DNA from: Guillardia theta CCMP2712
Taxonomy: Eukaryota > Protista > Cryptophyta
Assembly (NCBI RefSeq): GCF_000315625.1
Contig: NW_005434668.1
Location: 304,938 to 368,937 of the forward strand
DNA length: 64,000 nucleotides
Reading direction: 5' to 3'
Below the pieces are notes generated by a model. That model worked only from the letters and a program-made list of their open reading frames with translations, made no database searches and was not told the origin of the DNA. How positions within the stretch are numbered: position 1 is the first letter of the stretch; each line of letters starts with the position of its first letter. Shown here in pieces: positions 6,687-60,675 of this stretch. A program made the position numbers and the translations under genes.

Positions 6687-8816
<2,130 letters not shown>

Positions 8817-9119
8817 ACCAGCTGATTCAGAGAGAACGAGGGCATCAGTTTTGGCCCTGGCATCTTACGAGTCAGACTACCTGATAGTAACAGTTTCGGT
8901 CGATCGGCCTGATTCAACGGTAGTAGCCTCAGCGGCTAAAGGATGCGGCGTTAAGATTTTTCGATCAACGGACTGGATTTTCGAGCGGATTCAGGACCTC
9001 TTTGTCTGTCGCACTGCCACAGTCGTGACTGATTGCCGCCACAACGTGCCAAGTTAACTCTGTAAAACTAAACCTTGAAACTTCCCCCGCCCAATTGAGA
9101 CCTGCTCAGTTCAGTGCTG

Positions 9120-9275
9120 TCCGAACCCGGGCGAGCCAGTACCCGGCCGGGCGTGCCGGCTCAGCGGCTCGCCGCGCCGCCAACTTGGAAGGACTTGGCC
9201 CGACGGTCCGTCGGACGGTCAACTGTGATCGGAGCACTGCAGGGCTAGTAGCCAGTGCTGCCCCCGGCCCATAAT
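9120..9275. promoter_or_regulatory. GC-rich palindromic patch upstream of the kinase gene
   Basis: Same CCGG/GGCC vocabulary as 3040-3405; lies just 5' of the ATG at 9339. Confidence 0.4.
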
Positions 9276-9338
9276 GAGCTCATAGGCTATGAGACTAGCT
9301 TATTAGTTTGCTGCCCTCGTCGCAAAATCGGGGAGACA

Positions 9339-19867: not shown

Positions 19868-20071
19868 GCCTTGCACCGCCTCAGAGGAAATTTCTTTCAG
19901 AGGATAATACTAGAGCACCGGGCGAAGAAGCTTTCCCGGAGGAACTTCAGAACGAGGCAGCAAGAGGAGGAGGGGAGGATGAAGTCTAGAGTGTCATGTG
20001 ATGTATTACACAGCGAGCTCACAACGAGGAAGAGCAACGGGAGGAGAGTAGCAGCAGCAGCAGCAAGCCCT

Positions 20072-21929: not shown

Positions 21930-23511
21930 ATGATAAAATCGTACCTGATGGAGAATCATACTGGCCAAAGTCGCCATTTACATGTGAAGATATCTTCACA
22001 GCCCCCGACGAGGCTGCACCGGGCTTCCTTTCCCCTCAATCGCGCAAGATCAAGGGAGCTGAGTCAAGAAGGTGAGAGAACGCGGACGATGTGTTTTCCT
22101 TCATGCATGATAACTTGAATACTCTCTGTGTGCGTGCTTCTTCTTGGATGTCACTCTCATCTGGGGTCGTGACTTGACCTGTCTTTACAGCTTCAACTCC
22201 CCAGACACCTTGTTCTGCCGATGGTCTCCGCAGTATGTCCCTAGGATCACATCGGATGAAAACATCGTGACTTCTGTCGAACAATCTTTTGCCAGCTCCA
22301 TCAGCTATGATGAAAGCTTGCGCGCCTACAACGACAAGGCGCATCATTTCACATTGCTGAATGTAGATCCTCCCAACTTCATCACAGAGCAGATCAGCAC
22401 AAACATGGGCAACCTGCAGTCTTCGTACACTTCAGTCGTGAAACCTCTCATTTCGCATCAAGTTCCATGTAATCTCTTTGCCGTCTGCTCGATCTTGTGT
22501 GCTGATCTTGATTCAGGTGTGAAGATCGAGTTGAGATTCGGAAAGAATTTGTCCTCCCCAGAAGTTGGACGGACGCCTAGTTCGTTTTGTAGGATTTCTC
22601 TTCACAATCTTGCAGGTTCAGAGATGGAGGAAAACAAACAAAAGAGTTCAGCCCTGCGCATTCACGACTTGAGGCCGCAGATTACGAGTGAGGTAGTGTA
22701 CAATGACTGCAACCCATCGTGGTGGGAGAGATTCTATGTCTGGAAGGCTTATGCATGTAAGATAGTACAAGAAGGAGAGCATGAGGTGGAACACGTCGAC
22801 GAGGAAGATCTGGATGATGATGACAAGGTTGGGGTGTTATTTAGTGTGCACGACAACACATCTCGATGGAAAGACGCCATCGGTTACGTCATGGTTCCCA
22901 TAACTCGCGGGCAAACGATCTGCGAATCATTTTCTTTGCGTACGAGGGAGGGAAGACTTGTCAAGGATCCTCAGGGAAGATCGGTGAGCATACACGCCAA
23001 GGTCATGTTTGCAGCGGAAGCGCTGGACCCTTCGGTCAGGCAAGCGAGTCACGTCTTGGACAATGATGTCCCGGTGGTAAGCAACAGCGACGACCAAACG
23101 ATACAGACCCTACAGGCCTGCGTTCGCCGACAGCTGGTGTTGGATTGGTATCGATCCTTCCAAAAGCTGAAATTCTTGGGAGAAGCCAAGAAGAGGGTGA
23201 GAGATCACTCGGGGCCAGTGAAGGAATACTGCGGCAACTCAGAGCCTTCGGGCTCTACATTCAACTCCTCATCCTCCACAGCCACGAACCTGCCCGGCCA
23301 TCGCCGGAAGGAAGACAGCTCTCATCGTAAGAGCATGCCAAAGACCTCGACGTCCGACGTGCAGGAGATTGCAAAGATAGAAGCCAAGGCATTTCAAGAT
23401 CTAGCTCGAGAGCTGGACGAGCGAGGATTCGCAGAGCGAGCGAGGATTTATCATTACATGGTAGGTCGACGAAAGAATATGGAAGATGGCAAAACCGACG
23501 GGCTGAGGTGA
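21930..23511 (+). CDS. C2-domain protein with an IQ-like motif (5' exons uncertain)
   Basis: SFCRISL...TSEVVYNDCNPSWWERF...LFSVHDNTSRWKDAIGYVMVPI (C2), and IQTLQACVRRQLVLDWYR (IQ-like). Confidence 0.6.
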
Positions 23512-36052: not shown

Positions 36053-39000
36053 TCACAACAAGTCCATGTCAACATAATCCTCAAGGTTGAACTCCGAGCC
36101 ATCTGAGAACTCATCTTCTTCCATGAAGGCTGAGATCCCCGCCGAGTCCAACGAAATGTCCAGCTGTTGCTCTAACTGCCTCCTATGCTGCTGCTGCTGC
36201 TGTGGCTGCTGCCTGCTCGGTCGACCCCTCCGCCTTCCTTCTGCCTGCGGCTGAACCTTGTCCTCGCTCGCTAGCCTCAGCGCGTTGTTCAGCAAGTTCG
36301 CGCACTCCTCCACGGTCGAGCACTTAATCAAGTTGGCAGCGTTGAAGGGGATGACGAGCTCCACGGGGAAGACAGTCTTGTTATGGTAGGCTACCTGCAG
36401 GAACCTCTTCAACTCCACGAGCAGGTAAGCGCGAGAAGCTTCCTCCATGAATTCGAGAGCCTGAGGAGAACTGACTGGGATCTCAGTGTCATCCTTGAGC
36501 ATGGCGATGGAGGCGGTTCCGATCATGATCCCTGCGTCGTTCGCCTGCCCGACGAGCGACTGGACTATCTCCTGGTCGGGGTAGGGCAGAGAGGCCATAA
36601 TGCTGACGAGGTACTTGAGGTTTTCGACCTCTGATGCGATCGTCTGCCGCTCGTGAGATTCAATCTTGTGCTTCAGCTTGTCAATGGCATGCTTGACAAG
36701 CCGTTGAAGGAACTTCTTGTTGGGAAGCCGAAGTTCAAGACATCTGGAGAAGTTCTCTACGGCAATCAGGTCCGAGTCCTTCTTCAAGCTGAATCCCTTC
36801 ATCACTCCTTGGATGAATACTTCAGGACTGTAGTAGTCTGGGTACTTCTCAGAAATGTTCCTCAACACCTGATAACCGACGCTTGCACAAAGAGGGCTTC
36901 TTTGCTGCACTGAGATCATGTCAGGAATGCACAACTGAGGATGCACTTGGCCGCGATCGTGAATGGTAGAAACCAATTTGAGAGCTGCAGAAGCAGTCTC
37001 CTCCTTTTTGCTATACAAACACGCTAGGATCCGTTCCAGGTACTGCTGCATTACTGTGTTACGTAAGCAAGTCGATTCTTGATCAGAGACGTCTTCTTCT
37101 ATGAATTCTGCGAGAGCAGAAATGGCGACAAGTTGCACCTCTTCAGTGCTGGTCGCATCAAAAGCAGAGGCCAATGCGCGCTTTGCAGGGTCCTTGAGGA
37201 TCAAATTCGGTTGCCTCACAAAAATGCTGCCAAGACATGAAAAGCCGGCACGTTTGAACGGCAAAAGCTTGTGCTTGACAAAGTGCTTAATGCACGTGTC
37301 ATAGATTTCCATGACATTCTTGTCCTCGATGGCTTTTCTCTTCTTTCCTTGCAACGTGATCTCGAAGTTTGAAAACTTGCAGAAAATTCCAGCAATCAAC
37401 AAGGATCGTGGTTTCGCAGCAAATTTTTCATCATTGAGACGTTTAACCTCGCGGTTGAAACAAGCTGTGAGCAGTGCGTGCATTTGATCAGAGTGTTTTC
37501 GTATGCTGCCCACACTCTTCACAAGCGTGCACAGACACTGAATTGAAATCGTCAGCAGTGGCATGCTGGGAGCAAACTGAATGAGACGTGGAAGATCCTG
37601 GGATAGATACTTGATGAGATGTTCCGGAGGATCGTTCAGAAATGGAAGTACGCAATCATAGATCGCTGCAACAGTTCCGATGAGCTCACACTGCTCCTTG
37701 CTCCAAGGACTGCCATCTTTCTGCTCCCCCTTGGAGGACAAGTGCTGATGAAGCAACTCCATGTCCTTGGCAATCAGAGGTGGTCGGGCCTTTGCAAACA
37801 TAGCTAATGTTCGAAAAACAGACAACAGCTTATCTGGTGTGTTGTTTGACTCCTCGTTGAATTGGATAATTTCTTGAAGCGCCCGCTGACAGTATTCTAG
37901 ACTTTCTTTCACAAAATTTTCACCTTCATTGGTGGTGTCTCGAAAAAAATCGTGTAAGATGTCGATAACAGATATCGATTCTCGTCCTATTGTTGTTGTA
38001 CTTCGATGGGCAGCGTTCACCACACTCTTGATCTGCTCGAAGCGAGAAACAATGCTTAGCACAGACCCATCTGGAACTCCTGGTCTTCTTGCGGGAAACC
38101 ACATCTCCTTCAAGAATTGGAAGGTCCTCTTCTTGATATCGTCACTTTCGTCCTTCAAAAGGGGAATGATAGCAACACACGCACTATCAACAACATTCTT
38201 GTCTTGGCCCTCCTTTGCCAGCAAATCTCGCAGGATATTCATAGCAGCTTTTCTGACACTTGAGCCTGTATCTCTGCATCTTTCACAAATACTCTCGTGG
38301 TACTGTAGGGTTAGATTCGTTTCCTGGCACATAAACTTTCCCACAAGGAGGACTGCCTCAGCTCTCACTGCCTTCGACGCGTCTTTCATACTTCCACAAA
38401 CAACATCTCTTACTCTCTCATTTGACAGAGTATTAGGGTCCATTTCAACCACCTGAGAAAGGGCTTTTAAAGCTTTTTGACGGAATTGAGGCATTTTGGG
38501 ATGCTTCAACAGTATCAATAAGGGTTTTAGGATGTCTTGAACGTCGAAAGTTGCTGCCAGGTATTTGGAAAATTCCCAACTTTCATTCGAATTAGGCGAG
38601 GGCATATCAGGTCGTATTCTGTAATTGCGATCTTCCGATACTAGATCATAATAAGCATGAACCGAGTTCGATTCAGTCTGTTCACACCACATGTAAAGCC
38701 ATGTCCTTATCACGTAGTGGTAGGAGGAATCCTCAGTGAGCTTGTTTGCAAGGAAATTTAGAAGTAACTGTTGAGCAAAAAGCTTGTGCAAAAGATCCTC
38801 CGGGGCATCAGAGTCTTGCAAAAGAGGACTTTCTGTAGAGCTCGCCAAATTTTTCATCCAACTGCATCTCTGAAGATACTCTTTCTGTTGCCCAACGAGG
38901 GATTTGAACGTATCATTGTAATCAGGAATGGTCATATGCCCTCCTTCTTGCATGATATCCGGTCTGTTGGCATGCATGGCTAGGTCTTTGATACGAATGA

Positions 39001-40835
39001 CAATGCTGCCTAACAAATCTGCAGCCATCGTCTTAACAGCAAAAGGGAAATCTTTGATACACATCTCGTAGGAATATTTCCAAAATGCCTTCAAGACCAG
39101 GGAGGCAATCGGCCATTCTGGTGTCCCTAGAACGACTGTAACATCCATTACTACAGTTTGATAGAAGGATTTGTAACCACTAGCCTCCACTTTGTCAGTT
39201 TTTTTCACAATCAACTTTTGCATGAGATATCTGATGAACGTAAGCAGCAAGGGAAGAGCAGCATTCGTATTTGAGGTTTCAGTCTCCTCACGATCAACCG
39301 AGTTTAAGGGCCTTTTCACAACGGCTTGCAATAACGACAACAGAAGGGCTGTAGACATCTGGATAGAGGCAAGTCTTGGCGTGGAGAGTTGATAGCAAAA
39401 ATCCTTCGTAGCTGGTTTCCATGTACTGCACCTTACCAGGAATTCGTGAATTATATTTTCTCTGTGGCCATCATAATATGCAAAAATGTTTTGCATCAAC
39501 GGGATGCAAGCTTGTTGGCTGTAATATAAATACTCGGCACCCTCTGCAAAGAAGAGGCTTAGGCACAAGTTGGACACTCGCAGCAATTCCGAATCTTGAA
39601 ACTTGACGTTGGGAATACTGACAATCTTGTTCAATAACTGTATAGCTTCACTCATTATAGATGCATGACGAAAGCAATCTTGACGTAAATCATTCGTGCT
39701 CTGTCTCGACTTTCGTTTTCGCCCTGGCTTCTTTTCCTCAATTGCTAATTCTTCTTTCAGCGCCTTTTCCAATTCTGGCAAAAGTATTCGATTGCAATAT
39801 CCCTCCAAGAACCTGACAATAAACTCAAGCGTTTCATCTGTGTACACTTTCGGCCCGAGAACTTCGTCTGACAGAAACTGCATCGCCATCTGCGCACACC
39901 TCATGCATTGCATCGGCAGAGAGCCTTCCCACAAACCTTCGTTGCTGCACTGATTGATAGCAGGTTCAATGGCACGAAATACATCGCGTACAGTGTCTGT
40001 CGGAACTTCAACTAGCTTGTTTTGCACCTGAGCGTTTGTAATCTCTTCGCAGATGCTTTCCATGATGTCTTCCCAGCAAATAGATACACCTTGCACATCA
40101 TCGACCAACTGACTCAAGAGAGAAGATAAAAGCTCTAACGATGGACTGCTCTGCTCTTGATTCTCATCGAGCTCGACTTCGCCAAGGTTAGAAAGTTGAA
40201 TTTGATTCGAATCCTTCTCTGTCACAGGCTTGCTTGTGAACGAGCGCCTATCATTCCTCTTGCTTTGGTCAGGAGCAGGCAAGTGTACAGGCTGATTTGA
40301 GGAATCTCTTGCATCAATGTGGTGAAGATAGAGATTGTCCAAGAAGCCAGGCTGCTGTCTCTCAATCTGCTGCAAGAGTTCGTTCGAGTCAGGACGGAAC
40401 CTTTTAGAAGCCTCCATTCCCCTCTGGTTCATCCTCCTACAACGAAACTGAATGTCAGCGCGTGAACCATGGTAGTTGCAACTTACAGCTTGAGAGGTTC
40501 TGCTCGCATTAGAATCTGTAGCACCTCTTCAGCTTTGGGAGGTGCAGCTGCAGCCTCAGGCGGCGGCAGGATGGCATTCCAATCAGGGCACAAGGAAGGC
40601 ATAGGAGTTGCATTGGCAGCAAGACAAGGTGTGGATGTCGACATCTCCAACACAACTGGAACCCACATCAGTATCTAGACACAAAAACATCCCACACTCT
40701 CGGTACAGTCCCTCAGTCAAGCAGTAACAACTCTTCTCCTATGGCCATGCCTGCACTGCATGATATTGCCGGAATAACATATCGCAAGTCCTGCATTCTT
40801 GATGCATCCCTGCTTCTGATACTGCTATCCACCAT
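36053..40835 (-). CDS. NIPBL: Cohesin loader Nipped-B/SCC2 (one ~4.4-kb exon plus short 5' exons)
   Basis: 1459-aa HEAT-like ORF with LGTPEWPIASLVL, RQKALKALSQVVEMDP, DASKAVRAEAVLLVGKF, DTGSSVRKAAMNILRD, MQQYLERIL, GQVHPQLCIP. Confidence 0.92.
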
Positions 40836-42558: not shown

Positions 42559-45500
42559 TTGATCTCAGTTACCCTCCAGCCAAGAGAGGACCTCCAACCA
42601 GCGTCCAACATCTCCATCTGCGACATCCAGTTCTCACAGACGTCCTCCCACTCGTTCTCCGCCGACCAATCGTTCCCGTACCGTCTCTGGTCGAACATCG
42701 AGGTCACAAGTGCTGAGTGGGTCAAGCAGGAGATGACAGGTTCCGGCTGCATGCTGTTCACTCTCTCAGAGGCGATGAGATCTAGCAACAAGACGGTCCT
42801 TTCTTTCCTCCTCCGCAACCCCTCCCATGCGTCTCAGTGCTCGCAGCTTGCGAGCATCCAAGTCAACCAAGAGCAGCAGGAGCGTATGAACGGCCCTTGT
42901 CTCCTCCATGCAGCCCGCGTGCCTGGCCTAACAAGCTTTTCTGCTTCCTCAAGCTCGGATGTCATCGGGGCGATCGCGACAGTCACCATTGACATGGTAC
43001 CCAACTTTGTCATTGCAAACTCAACAACCATCACTCTCTCCGGGATCTTCGACGGGTTCTCCTCCTCCAACAACTCGCTGGAGATGGTGGAGACAGTCGG
43101 AAACATACGCGTCGACTTCCAGGAGATTTACAGCAGGCTGGTGCTGACGTGTACAGACGTCGTCATGGCCAGGACCCAGCTCAGGATCACCTTCAAAATG
43201 CGCAACAAGTGGCAAGCGGACGCGTTTGGAGCCAGACTGAAAGTTATCATTGAGAACCTGCCCCTCCAAACTCAGCAGGACCTGGAGCTGTCGATCAACG
43301 GGCAGACAGTCCAGCTGCGGTCGGTGTCATCTACTTCAGCTGAGCTCTATGCTGGAGGGGTGCCGGTAAACCTCTACGTCTCGAACATCCGGTTGCCGCA
43401 GCATGACGGCCTGACCGGCAATTATCAGATCACAGCCACAAGGGGGAACTTGACTATCAGTGAAAGCTCCGCGATAGCTGGCTCGCTGATGGAGCCCTCG
43501 TTCGTCAGACTCCCAGCTGGTTTCCTATCTCCGGATCTTCCTCGTTACACCGAGCTGGATGGATACCCTGTCGAGATCTCCTCCTCCCCTAGTCAGTTAG
43601 GAGCATGCGATCCGCAGCGGCTTGCCCAAGGTTACCTCTCCCCCTACAACTGCGTCTTCCTCCCCGACCCGTCGAGCCTCCCTGCGCAGCAGGTACGGAG
43701 GGAAGGAGTACACCAAGCTTGACACCATTGACCTCACCATTCCCCGCGTGCGGTCAAGACGTTTCAGCGGATTCAGCGGCACCTTCCAGCTGCTAACCCT
43801 CGTGAGTAGCTACGAGATGATCGAGATGAACATGCAGGTCAACGGAGTCCACCTGCTCCCCGGCACGATGTCCAACGTTGTCTTCAGTCTCCCCTCCTTC
43901 ATCTCCCCTGTGCCCAGCTCCCTGCTCGTCAGCTTCAACTCCAGCAACCCTCTGGTCCCTGACTCTGAGGTCCGCATCGAGTTCTACAGCACCCCAGCAA
44001 ACCTCGAGCAGGCGAGCATCGGCTTCTTCGACGGGCCCTTTGACAACCTTATCATCGCCGGCACCTCGATCTCGGTCGGAGGTAACAAGATCCTCAAGCT
44101 CAAGCCACAAGGCGTTAGGGGCCTCGACCAGCCGTTCACTGCCGCCATGAGACTGGACGGCCTGACGTTCCTACAGACTACACCAATGCTCCCCGTAAGT
44201 CCTGACGACCTGTTTGACCTTTTTCCGTGGTCTTATAGCTGGGCTTCTGCAGGAATTTGTCGTGCAGACCATCTCGAGTCATGACAACCAGCTGATCGAC
44301 CAGAGCGACTTCACCAGCCCCAGCAGTGACTCTCATCAGTTTGCGCTGGCGCTGGTCAATGGGATCCTGGTGGCCTTTGACGCTTCAAGTCCCGATAAGG
44401 TAAGAAAGGGAGGACGAGAGAAGAGAATGTGAGGGGAGCAGGGGAGCAGGGGAGAGGAGAAGGAGAGGAAGGCAAATGGAGAGAAGAGGGAAAGTGAAGA
44501 CAAGGAGAGGAGGAGAGGAGGAGAGGAGGAGAGGAGGACAACGGGTTTGTCAAAACCTGCCGGATTTCACCAGCAACATAGAGTTCCCGAATGCCTTGCA
44601 CGGTGACTTGGATGTCTGCAGGCTGTACAGGTTGCCAACATCAGCCAGCTGGAGGTTGCGCAGCAGATCTCAGCGGTCGATGCCTCCTTCTCTTCCGTCT
44701 TGTTCATCGACAGCATATCCCTGGTCTCTCTGGACCTCAACTCCCATGAGATTACCTCCGTGCTCCTCAAGAGCGGTGCTTCTCTCGTCAACGAGCTCGT
44801 CTCCATGCGCTGGGATGTCGAGCGCGAGAGACTGGTGGGGATAGCGATCATGGACGACGGCTCCTACTACTGCGCGATTGACAGGTGAGCAGCAAATGCC
44901 CAGTTGTGTTTTAAGAATGTTTGACTTTTGTTTCTCCTCCTCTTCCTCCTCCTCCTCCCATTCACCTATCTTTCTCTCCTTCTCCACTTTTTCGCCATTC
45001 ACGAATCTTCCCTCCTCCTGTCTTTCCCTTTTTGTTCTGCTCCTCTTGCTGTTCTCTCGCTCGCTCCCTTCTCCTCCTCCTTCCTTTCAATCTCCTCTTG
45101 CTCTCTCCTTCCAACAGGTTTTCCGGAAACGTCACACGGCTCGCTGTCATTCCCAGCTGCGGTTCGATCGAATGCTCTCTCCAGCGAGGACTTTCAGCCT
45201 TCAGTCCGACCCTGGGGCTCTACTTCAGCGCCTCTTTCCTCGCCCTCCTCACACTTGACTCAACGACGGGACAGATTCTCTCCCATGCCAGCTGGCAGCC
45301 CGACGTGTCAAAGTTCGACGGTTTCTTCTCCCTGCAGTTTGCGGGTAACAGCAGCCTCAAGTCCAGCGGCGACGATGGTCTGCTGGGGCTCAGCACGCTA
45401 GGAGGGACGGAAGTCGCGCTCTTCAGCCTGAACTCGTACAGCGGGAGGGCAACCAAGGTTCTCAAGGTCATGGAGGCGGAGCAGGAGGCAGACCTGGTGG

Positions 45501-47940
45501 GAGGACCCTCGTGCTTGAGCGACAACAAGCTTTACCTCCTCCTCTACAGCACCCGCCTTGTCCTCATTGACCTGACCGATGGCGCCGTCTCCTTCCTCGC
45601 CCCCTTCAACCTTCAGGGCCTGGGGATACCCCAGCCTCAGACAAGCTGGCACTGGCTTGAACTCGTGCCGTTCCAGGTAGCCCGCAAGGTGGACATGTTC
45701 GACGACGTTCAGTTCTCAGTGTGGGACGACAACATCACCGTGCTGGGGCTGCCGGAGAGCCTACCCATCAGCCCAGGATCCTTTGTTCGCGGGGTGTATT
45801 TCTCCCTCACCCTGCTGGGCTCGGGGGTGCGAGTGAACGACAGCATGCAAATCACGCGCGTTGGAGACTGTCAGTCAGTGCTGCCCGGAGGTGGTCCCTT
45901 CCTCATCAGAACTCCAGAGCTCCACACCCAAGACTTCGCCCTTGACTTCACCGACGAGCAGCAAGCCCAGCTCTGCATCCTCAGTGGCAGCCTGCTCGAC
46001 AGGACCCTCCGGGTCGTCCCCTGGGCACCGGAGAGGGGGCTCAGCTTCCCGCTGTCGCAGGCTGTGGTGGAGCTGCCCGTCGCTCCTCTCCCGCTCGGCG
46101 CTCCCGTGCTCGCTACCATGCGCGGCTTGCTCTCAACAGGTGACCAGCTGAAGATGGTGGTGGACGACGGGACAGCCCAGCCTGTCGATCGGTGCAAGTA
46201 TTCTCAGATGGTGCCCGGCACGGAGGTGCTGGAGGTGCAAACGGGGGGGTTCTCCCTCACCCAGCGATACTCGCGAGGATCGACGTCGATCTCCACCTTC
46301 CAGCTGCTCCTGACGGACAACTCTACCAGCACAATGACCTTCTGCTACCGCCGGAGAGGTGAAAGATTTGCTCCTCCTCGTTTCCTCCTCTTTCTCCTCC
46401 TGCTCTCCTCGTCCTCCCCTCCTCCTCAGTCCCAGTCGTCCTCCTTATTCCTTCATTGCCATCAACTGTTCAATGTCCTCGTTACCCTACTCCAAGCCCT
46501 CCTGCTCCCCGTCTTCCTTCTCCAGCCACCACTGCCAAGCCTCCCTTTCTTCCCTTCTTCTCTCCCAGCTCCTCTCTTTCTTCCCTTCTTCTCTCCCAGC
46601 TCCTCTCTTTCTTCCCTTCTTCTCTCCCAGCTCCTCTCTTTCTTCCCTTCTTGTCTCCCAGCTCCTCTCTTTCTTCCCTTCTTGTCTCCCAGCTCCTCTC
46701 TTTCTTCCCTTCTTGTCTCCCAGCTCCTCTCTTTCTTCCCTTCTTGTCTCCCAGCTCCTCTCTTTCTTCCCTTCTTGTCTCCCAGCTCCTCTCTTTCTTC
46801 CCTTCTTGTCTCCCAGCTCCTCTCTTTCTTCCCTCCTTGTCTCCCAGCTCCTCTCTTTCTTCCCTTCTTGTCTCCCAGCTCCTCTCTTTCTTCCCTTCTT
46901 GTCTCCCAGCTCCTCTCTGGCTGACTCACCCGCCTGCACAGGTCTCCTCTCTTTCCTACCTGTTCCTTACAGGCTGGCGGAGCAGCAGCCTTCTCGTTCC
47001 CTCAAGTTCTCTGTACCTCTCTCCACTCTTACCACCTGCAGCTCCTCGTCCAGCTGCCCTACTCTTGTTACTGTCACTGTGTAGCGTCGTAGGTTTAGTC
47101 TCGCTTGTCGTCTCCTTGCCCGTACAGTGCCGCAGCTCAAGCCATGGCCTGAGGACGAGGGCAACGGCGGCATGGTGAGAGTCAGTGGCGGGCCCGGCAG
47201 CGTCAGGCGAGTCACGGACTCTCACGGATGGCTGATCTCGGAAGTTGGATAAGAGGATTTTGTTTTCTCGAGTGCAACCATAAACCCGCAGCTGATGATG
47301 AGAGAGGACGAGGCCAGCAGCCTCGTGCTGAGCAGCCTCCGGGAACCGTGGTCCCAAGAAAATGCAGAGTCAGAGAACTCCACACAACAATAGTATGTTG
47401 CGATGATTGCTAGAGAGACAGAGTCAGAGACAGTCAGAGACAGAGACAGAGACAGTCAGAGACAGAGAAAGAGCAAGCAGTGTGTTTATGAGAGAGTCAG
47501 AGTCAGAGTCAGAGACAGAGACAGAGAGAAGGAGGGAGGGAGGGAGGGAGGAGGGAGGGAGGGAGGGAGGGAGGGAGGGAGGGAGACACAGAAAGAGTCA
47601 GAGCTGCAAGGAAGCGAAGGGACGAGGGAGTTTGCGGCTGCCCCTCGGTTATGCGACTTCCCGCCAGGAGGAGAAGGAGTCAAGTTTGTTATGGCAGCAT
47701 CACTTTCAACATGGCATGGCTTGGAGGTCTGCGAGCGAAGCTGGAGGAAGAGGAGAATGTCAGGGTTCATGGTCAAAAGCAACTGCTTCCTGCCGTCGAG
47801 TCAGACAAGATTCAATCAACGTGAAAGCCATGCATATGTCCCTTCTCCGGACCTTGGGAAAAGCTCCACTGCTGGCATACAGCAGGTCCGAGGTTACAGC
47901 TGCAAGCAGGATACAGCAGTGGACGAAGGCTCCGCTCTAA
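42559..47940 (+). CDS. Large beta-rich extracellular-type protein (repeated beta-sandwich units plus a propeller-like region); both ends uncertain
   Basis: Successive long same-strand ORFs (387, 220, 667 aa) separated by intron-like gaps. Repeated pattern ISVTLQP..L.P.SNISI / ATVTIDMVPNFVIANSTTITLSG and many NxS/T sites. Confidence 0.55.
46545..46918 (+). repeat. 31-bp pyrimidine-rich minisatellite (~12 copies) in an intron
   Basis: Unit ctcccagctcctctctttcttcccttctt(c/g)t; successive cccagc words at 46564, 46595 and onward. Confidence 0.95.
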
Positions 47941-48192: not shown

Positions 48193-50574
48193 TCATATCA
48201 TTCTCAGACTCTCCAGCTGCCTTTTAGTCTCCATCACTGACTGCAAATTTGCTGGAGACCAGACGCTTTTCCCGCTTTTTGAGAACGAGAGAAAGATCTC
48301 ATCGCCCATTCCCTCCTCTTCCTCCCCCCCCGCCTCGCGTTCGTCAGGATCAGCCTGTGTATGTAAGAGATCACAAACAGCTGGTCGCAGGCAGCAGCAT
48401 ACCTTGAGGAAGATGTATCCCCTCCCAACCGTTTCTATTCGCATCTTCTTCAGGTGCTCTTCCCATTCTAATCTGAAGTGAACGTCACAATTTTAATCTT
48501 CACTCGCGTAGCCTCTGCCCATTCCCTTCCCGTTTCTCCTCCTGCTTCTGCTCCTGCTCCTGCTGCTCCTGCTCCTGCTTGTCCTCTTAATTCTTCTTCT
48601 CCGTCGCATTTTGATTCATATTACTCTTGCTCCTAAGTTCTTTGTCTCTTTGTAAGTTTTGCCTGCTCACCTTTCAACTTTGTTTCCAGCTCGGGCTTCG
48701 CTGTATGTGGCAGGCTAGTGAAATCCTCAATAAGTCGCTCAGGTTCATCCTTCTCTCTCACCGTGTACATATTCTCCTCCTTGTCTACATGTACTAAGCA
48801 CCTCCATCTTCGTCTTCCACGGCTTTCGCTAAGGGGAGACGATTCGATCAGCCACCTGCTCGTCTTTTAGTGGATGTCTACCGCACTCGACCATCACCTG
48901 CTCATCCTCTCCGGAAGGAGATGAGCACAAAAGATCTCCGTTACAATCGCTACTCTCCCTCCAGCAGCCAGGTGTCGGCTTGCCCCGGTAATGATCCTTT
49001 TGAGGACTGCTTCTCCATCTTCTCCTCCTGCAACAAGAATCAACCGCATCTGTTTGACTCTCGTGTTCTCATTCCGACCATCAGCAAAGACGTCATATCG
49101 CTTGACCCGTTTCTTGAGATCAGACGGAACAGGAACGAAGGGAGGATTCGACAAGATGACGTCAAACCTCCTCTGCGACACCACAACTTCACTTTCAGAG
49201 CCTGCATCATGATTGGTGAGACCAGACGAATCATTCCTCACATCAGTCACATTACAATTCTTTTGAGCATCTTCACTTACCCATCTCATGTCCCATCTCG
49301 TCATGAAAGTCATAGAGATCGCCCTGCACGACCTTCACACTTGACGTAACTCCGTTGATCATCGCATTGAACCTCGCAAACCGAACGGCCCGTTCGTTGA
49401 TGTCAACACACGTCACCTGCTTGCCGTACAGTTTCGCTGCTGCAATCCCTTGGATCCCACTCCCGCAGCACAGATCGAGCACTGCCTCCTCTTCCTTGCG
49501 AGGAGCATGATGAACTAGACCGAGGGAGTCGGGCCCGATGTACATGACAGGCTCTTCTTCCAGCGCGGCAGAGCATGGAGGCATGAGATCTGTCACCATC
49601 AGCAGTCCCATGCTCTCATCTGAGCTCTCCCCTCGTAGCAGAGCAGAGGGGTCGATGGGAAAAATCTGTACATGAGGTACTAACAGTCCTGGGATGGCGG
49701 GAGAGGGGCCGACGAGCGACAACCTCGTCATGGCGGAGAGAACTTGATCGCCAAGAAGCTCTTGCACCTGCTCCACTGGAAGAGAGAGGCCAAGGAGGAG
49801 CATACGGATGACGACGTCTAGCTCGTCTCGTGGCGATGTCTGCATGCCAAGCAGATGTGCATGTCGGTGGTCGAACCTCCGCCGCACGTAAAAAGGCCCC
49901 GCTGTTTTTGCTCCAGCAAGCCCGAACCTCTGTTGCACCTTTGCTGCTGTGTATCCGATACTTGTCAAGAAGTTTTGCAGGACTAGAGCGTCTCTTACTG
50001 AATTGTTCTCTTCCTTCCTCTCAATATTTGATGAGAAGTCTCGAAGAACTTCGTTGATCCCCGTGGAAGTCACAAACTTCCCGTCCCACTGCGCCCAATC
50101 CGGTCTCAGTGACATGGCTATGCGGAAGTGAAGGAGCGCTCTTTGGCGATAGCTTGGATCTCTCTGTGTGAGCAAGGAGGAGATTCTAGCTGCGTGAAAG
50201 TGACTCGCCGCGTCTTCAGGATCGTTTCTCAAAATGTTGGCAATCTGATTTAATGCTTCTTCATACCTTCCCTCCTCTTCCATCGCCAGAGCCTTCACGA
50301 CTCCTCCATCATCATGCAGGCTTCTTTCAGGAGGCTCACGGAGAGTTGCGAAAATGAGGTTTCGCGTCCCACGTCTCGTCCTCCTTCTGGTCCTACCATC
50401 CCGACCTAGGAAGCATATGGCGGGCAAGCAGGAAGATCTTTGAGAACAAGAAAGAGTTGAAGTGGAAGACAGATGCTGATGCGAAGATGGAGAGAAGGAA
50501 AATATGGGAGATGTCATTGTCATCGTCATTATCATCGCCATCCTTCTCATCCGCGTTACCGATCGCATTTGCAT
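48193..50574 (-). CDS. Class I SAM-dependent methyltransferase (HemK/MTS-like, NPPF motif) with an N-terminal TPR-like region; possible plastid presequence
   Basis: VMYIGPDS, VLDLCCGSGIQG, VDINERAVRFARFNA, QGDLY, FDVILSNPPFVP, GEDGEAVLKRI; TPR-like EEGRYEEAL...DPEDAASHFHAA. Confidence 0.8.
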
Positions 50575-53777: not shown

Positions 53778-56700
53778 ATGGAGGGTATGTCAGATATTCT
53801 TGATGGAGGAGACCAAATTTCTCCGTGCATAGTCCTCACTGTCAGTCTTTCCTCGAGGAAGAGTGGTGCAGGTCTGTCTGTGAGCACAAAACAATGGAAC
53901 GGCTACGTTGCGCTACCTGCGATAGAAGGAGTTTGCAGTTGTATGTCCCTTGATCCTTGGACGAAGGACGTTCAACTCATGTATGACATGAAGAGAGTTT
54001 CTAGCACACTGCTGATCGCTTCTGACCATTATAATCAACAAGAGATATCCTTCTTGTTTTTTCTCAATGCGGTTGATGAAGTTCGAAATGTGTTCGGGAG
54101 AACATCGTATCATGCAGTGACGGTACACCCAAGTGCAAGAGATGTCTCAAAGGGAGTTGTTGAGGTACCTTTTCTGCACGCACAACAACCCTTAAGGACT
54201 TGCTTGCAGTTTTCTCCTGGAGGCAAGAAGTTTCGAAGCAAGCATATGGTTGATAGTATTGTAAGTGACATCGATACCTCGTGAGAGTTCGCCGACCAAC
54301 AACTTCTGACGACCAGTTGCAGATGCTTTACTATTTCGGTAAAACCAATTCAGAAGTCATCGCAAAGGTGATTGAGCTCCGTAGGTCAGCATGACAAATG
54401 TTTGATACTCCTCCTTTTGAAGGGTCTTTCAAAGAATCGTGCAGCAGTAGCCGGGATGATTACATGCGTTGAATCTAGGTAAAAGTTGCTGCTACGTTGT
54501 TCATATAAGAGCTGTAAGAGCATGTACAGTACATCTGATGGAGCAGCCCTCAGTGAGAATTACAATGGACCTGAACGAGCCGACAGTGCTCTCCAAGCAA
54601 TGGTCATCCGATCAATCACGTCGTTCGGATTTCAAGACTTTTTATCAGCTTCAGACTTTTATGAAGTGGAATCTGGATGCAAGCTCTTCCCTGAATACAT
54701 GTCTTTCAGAACCACCTTCAGCACCAATAGTATCGTTAGCAGCACCAAATCCATCAGCAGCACAAGCAGCGGCATGACAAGCAGAACCACAACAACAAGC
54801 AGGTCCTCAAGCAGCTCCTCAAGCAGCATCACAAGCAGCAGCAGCAGCAGCATCGCAGGCATCAACAGCATCGCAGGCAGCAGCATCGCAGGCAGCAGCA
54901 TCGCAGGCAGCAGCAGCAGCAGCACTTCGGTTTCTTGTCCTGCATTTTCCTTGTCCAATCAAGCTGAAAGCGTCAGCTCGATGAAGGCAGAAGACCAACC
55001 CTTGCCTACAAGACCTCTTAGTCAAAATAGCAGACCAGGTTCTGCCAACTCGATCACAACCACTCGCTCGGAACTTGAAGAGATTCAAAGGGATGGATCA
55101 CAGTCTCAATGTACAGCTAGTGAGCTATCGCAGCCTACAGATACAGCTAGTGAGCTATCGCAGGCTACAGGTACAGCTAGTGAGCTATCACAGCCTACAG
55201 GTACAGCTATTGAAGCTTCTATCGTACTGAAACCAGTTGCTGCAACCTACACAACTACAAGCTGTGATACGCTCCCCACTCCAAAATTCAGCTCTCGAAA
55301 AAACGCACGTAAAATAATCCGAGCACGGCGAACAAGCAACTTGAAGTCATTGAATCAAAACGGTAAATCAGAAATACATAGTGGCTTAAAACCAAGTTCA
55401 AGATTGTCTGAAGCATCGAGCAGCGCCTTGTCGGGCTTCGGGCAGACGAGCAGCACCTTGTCGGGCTTCGGGGGCAGCACCGGGCCAGCATTCGGTGGAG
55501 CAGCTGGGCTCGGATCAGGAGGCAGCCAGGCGTCGTCGAGCGCTGGAGCGAGCTCGAGCTCGAGCGCGGCATCGAGCAGCGGGTCAGAGTTTGGGGATGG
55601 AAAGAATTGTGGCATTGAGGACACACGGATCTGCAAGTATGAAGCCACTAAAGGGCCTGACGGTACAGGTACTGCCTCTGCAGTAGTAGTAGGGATGTAT
55701 CTTTCGATTACGCACATGGCTGTGTACTCGGGGAGCTCTTTTGAAGAACTCAGAGTCGGGGACTATTTGCTTAATCGTCGCTTTCTTGAACCGGGGAACC
55801 CGAGCCCAGTAGGCAGGACTGATCAACCATGTCTGATTGGATTTGGCAACAATTCTGGTTTTGCTACTGTGAATGGTTCAAGGATCAGAGAAGCAACCCC
55901 GGCCTTTCCTCCTGCGCCATTGTTTCAGTCGAAACCGCAAGACTCAAGGTTCGCGCAGGTTGAGCACGTGCAGTTTGATCAGGGCAAGATCAAGTTTGAA
56001 GGCGAATCAGCAAACAAAATGGGGATTGTGAAAGCAAGCTATCCCTTGAGTAGAGAGTATCCATACTTCGAAGTGTTCCTACTGAAAGACGCAGACCTCA
56101 ACTTCGGTATTGCTGTTGGGGTTTCTTGTGGGGCCTTCAATGCTGGGTCTATGGTGGGGAAGCAGCTGGGATCTATCGGCTATCACAGCCACGACGGCAA
56201 GTTGCACTATTGCACGAACAACATGTTTTCATCCAATCACATTAACTTCGGACCAAAATCCATGGCGGGAGACAGGATAGGATGCGGCATACTGAGCTTG
56301 ACGAATGAGGCCAGTGCGATCTACTTTGTTAGGAATGGAATCGAGATAGGAAGAATGGATCTAGATCCTGACATGTCGTTTCCCTTCGCTACCATCACCT
56401 CCAGTCATGGCGCCATGGTCGCCTTCGACTGCAAGCCCTGCCCTCCTCGTCCCGCCCTATCAGCTTGCCTTCTTCAAACTGCAGGCATGGATGTGCTGGA
56501 CACGGTGACAGGCGAGTGGAGGGCAGGAAAGCAGGTGGGAAAGGAAGGTCCTCGAGGAGTTCCGGTCCTGTTTGAAGGGTCAGATGTGCTGCATTATGCC
56601 AAGGCAGGGGAAGTAAAACCTTCAGAGTCAGGAGCTTCTGTTGAGGTAGAGTTCCCTACCTTGTCTCTAGCGCTGGAGGTGCTGCAAGCTGACGACACTG

Positions 56701-59700
56701 TCATCATCCAGAACTCTGAAATCTCTCAGTACTTTCTTGCTCCTCTAGAGATCACCAAGCCTTGCAGTATTGTGGCAGAGCGTGCTACCTCTGGTGCTAC
56801 CTCTGGTGCTACCTCGGGGATACCCAAGTTGGTATCTGTCGGGTCTTCTGCTCTGAGAATCTCTGCTTCTGGAGTTGTTCTTGACACTCTCTCCATCATG
56901 GCTCTTTCATCGCTGAGTAAGAACTTGTCGTTTACCTCGGGTGGCTGTTGTGGAGTGTTGCTGGCATCAGGATCTTTGACATTGAAGAACGTCGCAGTCA
57001 GATGCCCCAACGGCTCCGCAGTCTGCATCAACGAGACTGGTTGTCATGGGCTTCAAGTAGACGGCTGCAAGGTTGGGCCTTGTGGAAGGCACGGTATCGT
57101 CTTAAGTTCATGCGCTGAGGAAATTATCGTGAAGAATTCAACGATAGAAAATTGTGCAATGGTTGGTGTTGCGGCCAATGATTGTTGTGAGGCAAACTTT
57201 ATGAACTTGAACATTTCAGGCTGCAAGGTTGGTATCCATACTACTGGGGGAACCTTCAAGGTATCTGAGACAACCATCAAAGACTGCAATGAATCAGCTT
57301 TTCGCGTCTTTTGGAATCAACCTTTCAATGCACAAAAAATCCGCTTGGACACCTGCACGATCGAGAAGTGCTTCAGACCGATCGTGGCCGAGGGGAAGGG
57401 GCTCGAGATCGTCGTCCCCTCCTCTTGCATCATCGAAGGCTGCTCGCTCAAGAACGAAACGAAAGGAGGTGCGGTGATAGACTGGAAGAATGATCCCGAC
57501 CCGCCGGTAGAAACCTTCACGCCGCAGGACAACTTCAGCCGTTACATGAAACTGATGCTGGGCCTGGGAACTGAAGTCTTGGTGAAGGTGCTGAGAAAAT
57601 GTTACAAGTCGAGAACAGGCAAGAACTGGTACCACAGGACAGGGCGAGAGATAGCCTCTCGGATGAATGACTACCAGCGAAGTAGATTGGGCAAAGCCAT
57701 GCTTGAGCGGCTGAAGGAAGACGATATCGATAGCTGGGACATCACGCTGCTCTCAGCTCTTCTGGTGAACAATCCTGGCTACATGGACTCGTCGAGCTTA
57801 GAACGAGCAGTGGAGTCACTGAGAGATCAGAGGGACGAGTTTGTTCATTCCGCTAGCTTCAAGGACCTCTCCATGGATCACGACGAATTCCGATCGAAGT
57901 GGACGGAGGCCAAGGACGCTTTGGAGAGCTTGATCGGTAGTTTGCTGTCGTCGGAGGGAACGAGCCTGAGGAACCGCATCTCCTTTATCTACAACGAGCG
58001 AAAGGAGGGGAGCAGCGACTCGCGCAAGGAGAGGGAGGAGCAGCAGCGCAAGGAGAGGGAGGAGCAGCAGCGCAAGGAGAGGGAGGAGCAGCAGCGCAAG
58101 GAGAGGGAGGAGCAGCAGCGCAAGGAGAGGGAGGAGCAGCAGCGCAGAGAGAGGGAGGAGCACGACGTTGCTTCCCAGGTCCTTTATGCCATGTCTTATA
58201 TCTCGATGATGTGTGAATCCCTTTTCTTTCAAGTTGGGTCAAATCCCATCGTGGAACTTCGAGTCCTTCACGGACCTGCAGCAGATCGGCTCAGGCTCCT
58301 TCAAGCTCGTCTACAGGGCTCGGTGGCAGCAGCCGCATGGCAGCAGCGCTGACGTGGCGATCCAGCGAATCCAAGGCAGCGGACCCACTGGGAGGAGAGA
58401 AGAGTTCGAGCAGGAGGTGAAGATCTTCCAACAGCTGGGTCGTCACCCCAACCTCCTTCGCCTCCTCGCCACCAGCATCGAGCCGAGCTCCGGCGACTAC
58501 TGCCTGGTGACTGAGTTCGCTTCCAAGGGCTCTCTCGATGGGATCTTGTCCAACTACGCCGAGAAGGAGGAGACGATGAGTCTTCTGGTGCAGCTGCAGG
58601 TGGCGAGGCAGATCTGCGACGGGATGGTGCAGCTGTCGCTGCATGAGGTCGTGCATCGGGACCTGGCGGCGAGGAACGTGCTTGTGTTCAGCCTGGACCC
58701 GGAGGATCACCTGGCTGTCAGCGTCAAGATCGCAGACTACGCGCTGTCCATCATGGCCTCGCGCGGGTACGGGGAGAGCAGGGCCGGGAGCGTGAGCACG
58801 GCAGGCTCGACGGCTCGACCAGTGCGGTGGATGGCGCCGGAGAGCATCGAGAGGAGGCAGTACTCGGAGAAGAGCGATGTGTGGGCGTTCGGGGTGACCA
58901 TGTGGGAGGTCTGGACCTACGGCAAGATTCCTTACTGGGCCTTCACAGACGATTCGCTTGTAGGACCTAAGGTGCTGGAGGGCGACAGGCTCTCTAAACC
59001 TGAGACATGTCCTTGGGGATGCTACAGAATCATGCAGGAATGCTGGAAGGCCAGCAAACATGCGCGCCCGAACTTTATTGACCTTCAGAAATCGCTTCAA
59101 GGACAATATTACGATGCTCTGCTCAGTCTCTCCATCCGACGACAAGACGAAGGGAAAGTAAGCCTTTTCTTCTTTCTTGTCTTGCATTTTTGTATTGTAA
59201 GACCTTGTTCCAGGTGATTGGGAATCCGAGGCCCCAGGATGTACTGGAAAACTATTTTGATGTCAGTTTGAACCCTGAAAGTGCTGGTGAAAACAAGACT
59301 CGACACGACTTGGCCCTTGCCTTGGCAAACTGGATGCCGGAAGCGGAGAGCACGAGGCAATTCAATCCCAACGACGTGAAGGCATTCCTGGATCAGATCG
59401 ACAAGGGGCCACGCGACGTCGTCAAGGTCCGACTTGTTGAATCGTTTCTCCGAATGATGAACCCCGCAGATCATCGGCTTCTCCGAATTCCCTTTCACCA
59501 ACGGAAGGAGGCTGAAAGAGGCTAACTGGACCATCGAGCGCGAGTACTGGCTGAAGCTCGATCGCATCGACAGGCGTGTGGCTGGGGAGGACGGTTACGT
59601 CATCCTGCACGTGCACTACGCGGGCAAGTGGACCGCCGCACGGGACAGGCGAGACACATCGATGATCACGCAACTGAACATCCGACACACGACTAGGAAG

Positions 59701-60675
59701 GTGGAGCTCGCGTACCATCGCAAGTGCGTGGACCTCAACAAGTGGAAGGAAAGGCATGGGAGCGAGGTGCTCCCCAACCTGCCAGCTGAAGGCTGGCGCT
59801 GGCGGGAGAACCCGGGGATCTGCAGGTCCATGCATGGGCTGCTGATGGAAGCAGAGCGTTGCACCACCTGGGTGCGGTCTCTTGTTATCCCTAAAGCCTT
59901 GTCGCTTGCAACTCCAGCGGGAGCAAAGAAAGCACTGATCATCAGCAACAAGAAGTACCAGCACACGCAGATCAAGGACCTTCCCAACGCCATCATGGAC
60001 GGCTCGAAGCTTGAGTCAGCCCTGATGGAGCTGGGGTGGGATGTGGAGTTCGAGGTGAACTTGGGGCTCGAGGACATGGTAAAGGCTGTGAAGGGCTTCA
60101 GGGATTCTGTGAGGGAGGACCGTGATGCCGCCTTGTTCGCCTTCATCGGGCATGCGGTAGAAGTCAACGGGAAACTTTTCCTCATCCCCAAGGGCTTTCT
60201 GGCAGACAGCTTGACGGACGAAGACATGGAAGAAGATCTTCAGAGCTATGCCCTGCCCTTCAGCAAGGTGCAATCTTTCTTGCGAACTGCAAGGAAGGGA
60301 CGAAATCCAACTGTATTCGTACTCGACTGCTGTCGCAGCAACGGGCTCTCCGCCTCTGTCTCTCGGTCCTTTGATGTCGGAACAGACAAGCTCAGCGCTC
60401 CTGGGATCGACGTGGTCAACTCTTGCGTTGTCTATTCCACGCAGGCCGGACAAGTAGCGTTCGATGGGGAGCCAGGGCGTGGGGGACCTTTCATGTCGGT
60501 GTTTGCGGCGAACATCCTTGCAGAGGACAAGAGTTTGAACGATGTGATGGAAGAGACAAGGAAATCTGTGATCAACAAGACCAACATGGTCCAGATGGCT
60601 CCGTTTTTGACAATGCTTACGGAGGCTTTCTTCTTCAACCCCGGCTGTCGGGTTGATGTTAAGAACTTTGCGTGA
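53778..60675 (+). CDS. Giant multidomain protein: Ser-rich region, Nup98-like FG/GLEBS, SPRY, right-handed beta-helix, DZIP3-type HEPN, coiled coil, TK-like pseudokinase, unknown domain, caspase-like peptidase C14
   Basis: ORF 54486-58178 joins in frame through phase-0 GT-AG introns 58179-58233, 59158-59213 and 59427-59469 to the stop at 60675 (~2,010 aa). Linkage of the 5' exons from 53778 is tentative. Confidence 0.8.
55110..55210 (+). repeat. 30-bp coding tandem repeat (TASELSQPT x3)
   Basis: gtacagctagtgagctatcgcagcctacag units. Confidence 0.9.
58022..58160 (+). repeat. 24-bp coding tandem repeat (RKEREEQQ x5-6), predicted charged helix
   Basis: cgcaaggagagggaggagcagcag units. Confidence 0.95.

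Follow-up and report, generated by a model that had tools for sequence, protein, structure and literature searches.

A 64,000-nucleotide (nt) stretch of DNA from the cryptophyte Guillardia theta CCMP2712 (assembly GCF_000315625.1, contig NW_005434668.1, positions 304,938 to 368,937 of the forward strand; hereafter the window, with positions counted from its first letter) contains a single gene in which four open reading frames (ORFs) are joined by three short phase-0 introns. The product, read from the ATG at 54522, is 1,999 amino acids (aa) long, and the gene has at least four exons, spanning 54522-60675. From its N to its C terminus the protein is predicted to carry a disordered Ser-rich region, FG and GLEBS motifs, a SPRY domain, a beta-helix, a probable HEPN domain, six RKEREEQQ units, a kinase, a module of ~210 aa that defines its protein family and a C14 protease resembling the paracaspase MALT1. 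The original prediction, made from the letters and their translations, had proposed both the fusion of the ORFs and this order of domains, and Pfam and PDB profile matches place the domains in the order that it gave.

Structure of the gene

The four ORFs, all on the forward strand, lie at 54486-58352, 58213-59217, 59190-59525 and 59578-60675. Intron boundaries were checked base by base, and the exons were searched separately in the database searches reported below. The resulting gene model is as follows:

54522..58178, + strand, exon 1: from the first in-frame ATG, 1,219 codons in a single open frame (the ORF is open from 54486)
58179..58233, + strand, intron 1: 55 nt, GT-AG, phase 0
58234..59157, + strand, exon 2: kinase domain
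59158..59213, + strand, intron 2: 56 nt, GT-AG, phase 0, pyrimidine-rich
59214..59426, + strand, exon 3: first part of the family-specific pre-protease module
59427..59469, + strand, intron 3: 43 nt, GT-AG, phase 0
59470..60675, + strand, exon 4: core of the module, then the C14 protease, with a TGA stop at 60673-60675

These boundaries indicate that the four ORFs form one gene. Stop codons close the frames of exons 2, 3 and 4 at 8, 44 and 3 codons before their respective acceptors, and no methionine lies between the closing stop and the acceptor in any of the three, so that none of the three can be translated from a start of its own, and a complete kinase together with a conserved protease module is obtained only via splicing to the upstream exons. 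The acceptor of intron 3 is forced, as the frame of exon 4 opens just 3 codons upstream of it. Without splicing, the kinase would lose the start of its N-lobe and the protease module the first ~70 of its conserved residues. Exon 3 also has a homologue in relatives, in the sequence immediately before their protease module, with which it is gaplessly collinear. The position of intron 3 is conserved: a phase-0 intron lies at exactly this position in the G. theta paralogue XP_005818837, and the closest metagenomic relative (L050, 53% identical) has an intron there as well. In L050, too, the equivalent of exon 3 is internal: no methionine precedes it within its frame, which a stop closes three codons upstream. 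The small size of the three introns is normal for this genome, since many GT-AG introns of the RtcB gene in the same window are ~41-60 nt long.

Some latitude remains at two of the junctions. Intron 1 has an alternative in-frame donor at 58167 besides 58179, and the donors at 59158, 59179 and 59197 of intron 2 can be combined with acceptors at 59201, 59213 and 59237 to give five alternative in-frame pairs; these alternatives alter few residues, and the fusion is kept in every case. Codon scores are clearly coding-like in exon 3 and in the charged spacer of exon 1, and near zero in the 5' third of the gene.

The original prediction had the gene begin at 53778, and in this respect only the span 54522-60675 has stood. 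The additional upstream element is as follows:

53778..54284, + strand: ATG ORF of 168 codons in the same frame as exon 1, with stops at 54282, 54369 and 54480 between the two

Approximately 7,600 GT-AG paths could link this ORF to exon 1, and its joinability is uninformative because thousands of such paths are possible. It gave no match in Pfam or among the 178 relatives retrieved and has a codon score that is only weakly positive. That it forms part of the gene, which would move the true 5' end away from 54522, is therefore unproven, and we count it among the points that could still be held against the model given here.

Domains of the predicted protein

The features of the coding sequence, in order, are as follows:

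54796..55213, + strand: Ser/Thr-rich low-complexity region with 12-33-nt and 30-nt tandem repeats
55431..55499, + strand: short FG patch (GFG..GFG..AFG), read from the translation
55611..55781, + strand: Nup98-type GLEBS-like motif (ORF aa 376-432)
55959..56393, + strand: SPRY domain of the SPRYD3/RanBP9-10 type
56952..57446, + strand: right-handed parallel beta-helix, Pfam Beta_helix (PF13229)
57558..57989, + strand: probable DZIP3-type HEPN domain, with Ex3K at 57570-57587 and Rx4H (RDEFVH) at 57831-57848
58022..58162, + strand: spacer of six RKEREEQQ units, a 24-nt tandem repeat in 5.9 copies, 98% identical
58234..59157, + strand: complete tyrosine-kinase-like kinase, with GSGSFK at 58288-58305, VAIQ at 58354-58365, HRDLAARN at 58654-58677 and DYA at 58735-58743
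59470..59889, + strand: beta-rich core of the pre-protease module, the first part of exon 4, with Trp27, His47 and Trp111 invariant in family alignments A2 and A3
59926..60675, + strand: paracaspase-like Peptidase_C14, with the His codon at 60151-60153, the Cys codon at 60331-60333 and the TGA stop

The assignment of the C-terminal domain to the C14 proteases is firm as a prediction, the Pfam model Peptidase_C14 (PF00656) being matched at 4e-25 over profile positions 2-233 of 233 (89.3 bits against a cut-off of 21.4). Exon 4 as a single sequence had no match in the PDB, and MALT1 was reached there by the family profile only, at 1e-31, followed by caspase-1 at 1e-21 and with no metacaspase among the 60 chains listed in that search. 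An AlphaFold (AF2) model of exon 4 has a caspase fold (predicted local distance difference test, pLDDT, 86), and when this model was used in Foldseek, the best match was again MALT1 (2e-15), which also occupied all of ranks 1-16, at ~21% identity. The protease is thus paracaspase-like, as had been proposed, with MALT1 closest both by profile and by fold. Its catalytic dyad, His228 (in IGHA) and Cys288 (in LDCCR) of exon 4, is invariant in A2 and nearly so in the broader alignment A1. Three acidic residues of the exon-4 translation, D177, D286 and D332, are invariant or nearly so in the family alignments and in the family-profile alignment fall on three MALT1 residues, Asp in PLVDV, Asp in LDMCR and Glu in AFE, which we take to be the residues D365, D462 and E500 described for the P1-arginine pocket in MALT1 structure papers. 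This correspondence predicts cleavage after Arg or Lys, and with the dyad intact the domain is probably an active, Arg/Lys-specific paracaspase-like protease.

The resemblance to the MALT1 paracaspases (C14B) extends to the GH(G/A) His motif, the D-x-C-R Cys motif, the acidic residues just mentioned and the presence of a putative regulatory domain directly N-terminal to the protease. Unlike MALT1, however, the G. theta protein has no Pfam match to Death or Ig, the domains that flank the protease in type 1 paracaspases; the module in front of its protease matches no Ig or other PDB fold; and its protease is fused to a kinase and to HEPN, SPRY and beta-helix domains. We know of no CARD/BCL10-type partners in algae. 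The Cys motif is DCCR, whereas that of metacaspases is DxCHS, and by this feature the protein would not belong to metacaspase types I-III. A weak match to a bacterial EACC1-associated caspase model was also found. Metacaspase-like (orthocaspase-like) proteases of phytoplankton and bacteria are C14 proteases outside types I-III. They have been reported from algae that include G. theta, vary greatly in length and have been proposed to descend from bacterial proteins (Choi and Berges 2013, PMC3734836). That study, in which "kinase" does not occur as a word, describes neither a pre-protease module nor kinase-bearing multidomain forms, and the C14 domain found here spans the whole Pfam profile (2-233) and is not simply "p20 only".

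The kinase assignment is similarly firm on profile evidence, with Pfam PK_Tyr_Ser-Thr (PF07714) matched at 1.4e-65 over profile positions 5-258 of 258, and with EGFR, Eph, Abl, ACK1 and BRAF as the best PDB matches (EGFR, Eph and Abl at ~1e-40 or better). The motifs HRDLAARN and WMAPE are tyrosine-kinase-like, and PADLOC and NCBIfam contributed nothing beyond generic matches to kinases and caspases. The original prediction had called this domain a pseudokinase, and the beta3 lysine is indeed missing, having been replaced by glutamine (VAIQ), with DFG changed to DYA. However, the HRD Asp, the catalytic-loop Asn and the Asp of DFG are kept, and in an alignment to PDB kinases the third Gly of the glycine loop is replaced by a lysine (GSGSFK), which we take to be exactly equivalent to Lys233 of WNK1. 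WNK kinases, which also lack the beta3 (VAIK) lysine and have a lysine at the glycine-loop/beta2 position, are active with their lysine relocated from beta2 (PMC4718504). The label of pseudokinase is thus doubtful, since the glycine-loop lysine could compensate for that of beta3 in the same manner. Membership of the WNK family itself was considered and rejected: the domain is tyrosine-kinase-like overall, and no WNK appeared among the 60 chains listed in either the whole-domain or the N-lobe PDB search.

For the HEPN domain, the evidence is of two kinds, and the assignment is probable only. Pfam HEPN_DZIP3 (PF18738) is matched at an E value of 0.052 (13.8 bits against a cut-off of 27) over profile positions 73-132 of 144, corresponding to aa 1101-1162. 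This stretch contains RDEFVH (aa 1116-1121), an Rx4H motif in which Asp follows the Arg, and upstream of it lies TEVLVK (aa 1029-1034), an Ex3K motif. In catalytically active HEPN domains, the Arg of the Rx4-6H motif is followed by a polar residue, and Ex3[KR] lies upstream (PMC3710099); the segment agrees with both rules. DZIP3 (hRUL138) provides the best, though weak, Pfam family for the segment and shares with it the Rx4H with a polar residue after the Arg; it differs in that the match here lies far below threshold, is algal and has other partner domains. In animals, HEPN domains of the DZIP3 type are expanded and fused to CARD, Death, NACHT, TPR and RING domains in an immune or apoptotic context, and the family is found mainly in animals and Capsaspora (PMC3710099). 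The charged spacer that follows, rich in Glu, Arg and Lys, would be expected from its composition to form a single alpha-helix or a coiled coil. Its 24-nt repeat looks recently expanded and may differ in length among strains.

The N-terminal third begins with a region that is probably disordered, as aa 13-330 include 83 Ser and 34 Thr; the Ser/Thr-rich region has no Pfam match. The short FG patch is followed by a segment that is likely a GLEBS motif of the Nup98 type. Pfam Nup98_GLEBS is matched at 8.9e-4 (19.7 bits against a cut-off of 27), and the top four PDB matches, at E ~0.05, come from Rae1 complexes, being the GLEBS peptides of Nup98. A metagenome contig (L009, Ga0115567_10008467, 65% G+C) encodes a segment that shares 47% identity over 57 aa with that of the G. 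theta protein, and the L009 segment does pass the Pfam cut-off (27.3 bits) and finds the same PDB peptides at 2.5e-4; the counterpart of the FG patch on that contig has a weak Nucleoporin_FG match. As in Nup98 and Nup116, the pattern ..ITxM..Y...S.EELR..DY..NR+ is preceded by FG repeats, and the motif is predicted to bind a WD40 protein of the Rae1/Gle2 (or Bub3) type. The matched peptides are presumably those crystallised with Rae1, alone or with vesicular stomatitis virus M, Kaposi's sarcoma-associated herpesvirus ORF10 or SARS-CoV-2 ORF6. Unlike Nup98 and Nup116, the G. theta protein has the motif inside a signalling protein, with ~3 FG units and no Pfam match to Nucleoporin_FG or to Nucleoporin2, the autoproteolytic Nup98 domain, and it is not a Nup98 nucleoporin, as both the autoproteolytic C-terminal domain and extensive GLFG repeats are missing.

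Contig L009 encodes, on the same strand, an FG-nucleoporin-like gene with the GLEBS segment (585-2069) and, ~7.4-7.7 kilobases (kb) downstream, a stand-alone member of the paracaspase family (8345-9634), an arrangement that may be coincidence or conserved linkage. It was considered as a second fusion of GLEBS to paracaspase and rejected, as the protease ORF starts with a methionine of its own and the upstream gene resembles a genuine FG nucleoporin.

The two remaining N-terminal domains are also firm as predictions. The SPRY domain matches SPRYD3 (2yyo) in the PDB at 2.6e-14 over 145 aa, followed by RanBP9 (8.9e-6) and RanBP10 (2.9e-5), is homologous to the SPRY domains of family members P0010 and P0167, and falls below the cut-off of Pfam SPRY (1.5e-4, 22.3 bits against 26.3). 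Downstream of it, in an order shared with P0010, the beta-helix matches the Pfam model at 2.9e-10 (40.4 bits against 25.9) over profile positions 2-157 of 158.

The pre-protease module, its family and the neighbouring genes

Between the kinase and the protease lies what the original prediction had termed an unknown domain. The region is far from solitary and, judged by its conservation, is the hallmark of a protein family whose named members are all cryptophytes. The module comprises ~210 aa, consisting of the exon-3 equivalent and a further ~140 aa, and it directly precedes C14 with the consensus VxLN..FAxxFAxW..VIGFxEFPY..HVHYAGKW..RHT..GWxW, to which the G. theta protein conforms. Exon 3 carries the VxLN..FAxxFAxW..RxF motifs and is homologous to P0030 (6e-7), P0005 and L050 (1e-15, 51% identical). 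The AlphaFold model of the module has a pLDDT of 81 and a predicted template modelling score (pTM) of 0.81, and in the AF2 model of exon 4 the core of the module has a pLDDT of ~90. The module matched nothing among PDB sequences or BFVD viral folds and no PDB fold (best E 0.23), and against Pfam it gave no consistent match, with 11 families at E 0.016-0.18, each in one of 22 members. We regard it as a candidate new regulatory domain and as the most solid new element of this study.

An exhaustive search with exon 4 returned 36 representatives at E<1e-30, many of them covering query positions 1-391 and many matching across both the ~150-aa unknown region and C14. The named members come from G. 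theta, Hanusia phi and Rhodomonas salina, and the unnamed ones from marine and lake metagenomes, with G+C contents of ~46-65%. Alignment A1 was too diverse for the locus scan, for which A2 was used. Most relatives of the module are stand-alone proteins of 500-640 aa that start just before the exon-3 equivalent. Others combine the core with additional domains:

P0007 and P0167: Cbl_N2/EF-hand and SPRY with the core
P0010: EF-hand, SPRY and beta-helix with the core; the SPRY domain is homologous to that of the G. theta protein and is followed by the beta-helix
P0014: TPR with the core
P0013 (L049, 362-6790; 2,142 aa on a transcript-like 7-kb contig): C14 at aa 282-490, a DEAD/ResIII/Schlafen-like helicase at ~aa 1054-1220, then the module and a second C14 at aa 1634-2018

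The expectation of paralogues with swapped N-terminal modules was thus realised for SPRY, beta-helix, EF-hand, TPR and helicase partners but not for the kinase or HEPN domains, which have no counterpart in the 178 relatives retrieved. The module and C14 form the constant core of a shuffling family, in which the N-terminal 1,500 aa of the G. theta protein are a private accessory set. Contigs L002 and L050 are too short to show the sequence upstream of the core. A word-index search with the SPRY-to-HEPN region found no N-terminal homologue of comparable length, and a metagenome scan with SPRY, beta-helix and HEPN found nothing. The original claim that this architecture had not been seen before thus agrees with the word-index and metagenome searches and with the 178 retrieved relatives, and within the reach of these searches the complete architecture appears unique.

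Two further observations concern the family. On the eukaryotic contigs L048 (10001-15575) and L007 (4254-9936), ORFs for a second SPRY domain, which in L007 is 36% identical to that of the G. theta protein, and for a beta-helix lie downstream of, and on the same strand as, a gene that encodes the module with C14, EF-hand and SPRY domains; these ORFs are probably further exons of the same gene. In L050, the module switches frame at ~540-700, in the region equal to exon-4 aa 93-140, which suggests an extra intron or a frameshift without counterpart in the gene studied here.

The surroundings of the gene are those of eukaryotic nuclear DNA, with ~51% G+C, and include the following:

6687-8750, + strand: RtcB tRNA-ligase gene with at least 9 very short GT-AG introns
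36056-40432, - strand: SCC2/Nipped-B-like cohesin loader, a 1,459-codon ATG ORF with Nipped-B_C, cohesin HEAT and PDS5-like matches
961-2190, + strand: CRT-like (chloroquine-resistance-transporter-like) membrane protein
49276-50574, - strand: PrmA/MTS-type methyltransferase with a weak TPR match
44921-46921, 42559-43719, 22144-23508 and 19280-20224, all + strand: ORFs of 667, 387, 455 and 315 aa with coding-like codon scores and no Pfam domain

In RtcB, the conserved segments lie in different frames with gaps of 48-86 nt between them, and many introns are of the size given above, with clean cases at 7844-7891 (48 nt) and 7635-7678 (44 nt). RtcB is thus heavily split by introns, in contrast to the studied gene with its intron-free 3.7-kb exon, and the Nipped-B ORF is a second very long exon within this intron-dense region. 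The methyltransferase and CRT-like genes appear to be ordinary neighbours. Searches of the window found no tRNA or Rfam gene and no paralogue of any segment of the studied gene, and the antisense ORFs that overlap the gene have no Pfam domain matches.

Possible function

The arrangement of the protein is consistent with a signal-gated protease that would probably also be an RNase. The GLEBS motif would dock the protein on a Rae1/Gle2-type WD40 protein of the mRNA-export/nuclear-pore machinery, while the SPRY domain and beta-helix would bind a protein or glycan ligand, and clustering driven by this ligand would bring two chains together. Such pairing may assemble an HEPN RNase site from two subunits, in the manner of Ire1 and RNase L, in which dimerisation of the kinase or pseudokinase gates the HEPN-type RNase, and may switch on the protease, like MALT1, through proximity-induced dimerisation, leading to cleavage after Arg or Lys. 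The kinase might autophosphorylate by means of its glycine-loop lysine, in a WNK-like manner, or might act as a nucleotide-gated scaffold for dimerisation, and the pre-protease module would regulate the protease or dock its substrate. The output would be a decision on stress, defence or death.

One parallel is with Ire1 and with RNase L, an antiviral effector. In both, nucleotide-bound kinase dimers assemble an HEPN-type KEN RNase (PMC3710099, PMC4718504), and in RNase L a pseudokinase is coupled to the RNase (PMC4718504). The G. theta protein similarly combines a kinase fold and a probable HEPN-superfamily RNase in one chain, but its HEPN domain is DZIP3-like, unlike the circularly permuted KEN, and is separated from the kinase by a charged repeat spacer; there is no ankyrin or lumenal sensor, and the coupling proposed here is by analogy. 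A second parallel is offered by the prokaryotic and metazoan conflict systems described by Kaur et al. (2020/2021, PMC7159879, PMC8195603), which likewise join variable sensor and adaptor modules to caspase-like and HEPN effectors, and in which SPRY-like lectin-fold domains are sensors in eukaryotic immunity. Unlike those systems, the protein has no STAND/NTPase switch, death-like adaptor or TRADD-N, and everything is in one chain in a unicellular alga.

Several results weigh against the mechanism as proposed. The HEPN profile match is below the Pfam threshold, and word-index searches with the domain alone or within a long query found no HEPN homologue; the HEPN domain precedes the kinase, the reverse of the order in Ire1 and RNase L. 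The GLEBS score is sub-threshold on its own. The SPRY domain that the original prediction had identified is present, but it is of the housekeeping SPRYD3/RanBP9 kind and not the immune PRY-SPRY (B30.2) kind of the TRIM sensors. Pfam searches found no death-fold, NACHT, TIR or other canonical immune adaptor domain. None of the 178 retrieved relatives has similarity to the kinase or HEPN domain, so that this layout has been seen once. Given these points, we regard the single gene and the signal-gated protease/RNase mechanism, taken jointly, as having about an even chance of being correct, and it remains our favoured explanation. Within it, the structural part, namely one gene, the domain order, a paracaspase-like protease that is probably active and Arg/Lys-specific, and membership of the shuffling family, is well supported, while an immune or cell-death role may be suggested by analogy with the systems above.

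Of the other explanations, the one that we take most seriously, while considering it unlikely, is that the protein is a housekeeping factor of the nuclear pore or mRNA export, anchored to Rae1/Gle2 by its FG and GLEBS motifs and without an immune or death role. In this explanation, the HEPN domain would perform RNA surveillance at the pore, as in the HEPN-containing Swt1, and the kinase and protease would regulate export factors. The GLEBS and FG evidence from Pfam, the PDB and L009 fits such a role, as do a SPRY type shared with the scaffold or housekeeping proteins RanBP9/10 and SPRYD3 and the lack of canonical immune adaptors in the Pfam search. A housekeeping factor would, however, be expected to have recognisable orthologues, and searches of proteins of comparable length and of metagenome contigs gave none for the N-terminal 1,200 aa; the Nup98 autoproteolytic domain is absent from the Pfam matches; and the protease core belongs to a family whose rapid shuffling and many paralogues are more typical of conflict or lineage-specific signalling genes. 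Less probable again is that the gene is a young, lineage-specific chimera or is decaying, with its full-length product not made or without selected function. This would account for an architecture seen once, for the recent expansion indicated by the 98%-identical repeats, for a 3.7-kb unbroken exon that is unusual beside RtcB, which has an intron every ~50-100 nt in the part examined, for the codon score near zero in the 5' third and for the loss of the kinase beta3 lysine and the change of DFG to DYA. It is harder to reconcile with ~6 kb of coding sequence without a stop or frameshift, three precisely phased introns, protease catalytic and family-invariant residues that are all intact, the coding-like scores of exon 3 and the spacer, and a module that is also encoded in part by an internal exon in L050. 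That two or three adjacent genes (SPRY/beta-helix/HEPN; kinase; protease) have been wrongly joined seems to us very improbable. Although most relatives of the module stand alone, starting just before the exon-3 equivalent, and the family member on L009 has its own methionine, for the kinase, exon 3 and exon 4 alike the interval from the closing stop to the conserved start contains no methionine, the frame of exon 4 opens 3 codons before its acceptor, and unspliced versions would leave the kinase without its N-lobe start and the protease module without its first ~70 conserved residues.

The boldest explanation, which we offer as a long shot, ranking below the chimera and somewhat above the mis-joining of genes, is that this unicellular alga has in the protein an immune receptor of the guard or decoy type, contained in a single chain. 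Here, the FG/GLEBS segment would mimic the Rae1-Nup98 hub, and disturbance of the hub or capture of a ligand by the SPRY domain and beta-helix would dimerise the chain and fire both the HEPN RNase and the Arg-specific paracaspase, leading to a death similar to abortive infection, with the module representing a new class of paracaspase regulator with an unseen fold. The Rae1-Nup98 mRNA-export hub is attacked by animal viruses, and caspase-family proteases of algae have repeatedly been invoked in bloom collapse and virus-induced death; to our knowledge, almost nothing is known about how these algal proteases are regulated.

The gene provides a testable case in which a MALT1-like protease is tied to candidate sensors, a docking motif for the pore or export machinery, a kinase and a probable RNase. 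It also exposes a family, with named members from cryptophytes, in which a constant core of module and paracaspase is accompanied by freely swapped accessories. If the housekeeping explanation were true, the protein would represent an unusual link of the mRNA-export machinery with regulated proteolysis. If instead the immune or cell-death role were true, single-chain sensor-effector logic, perhaps including decoys, would extend to unicellular secondary algae.

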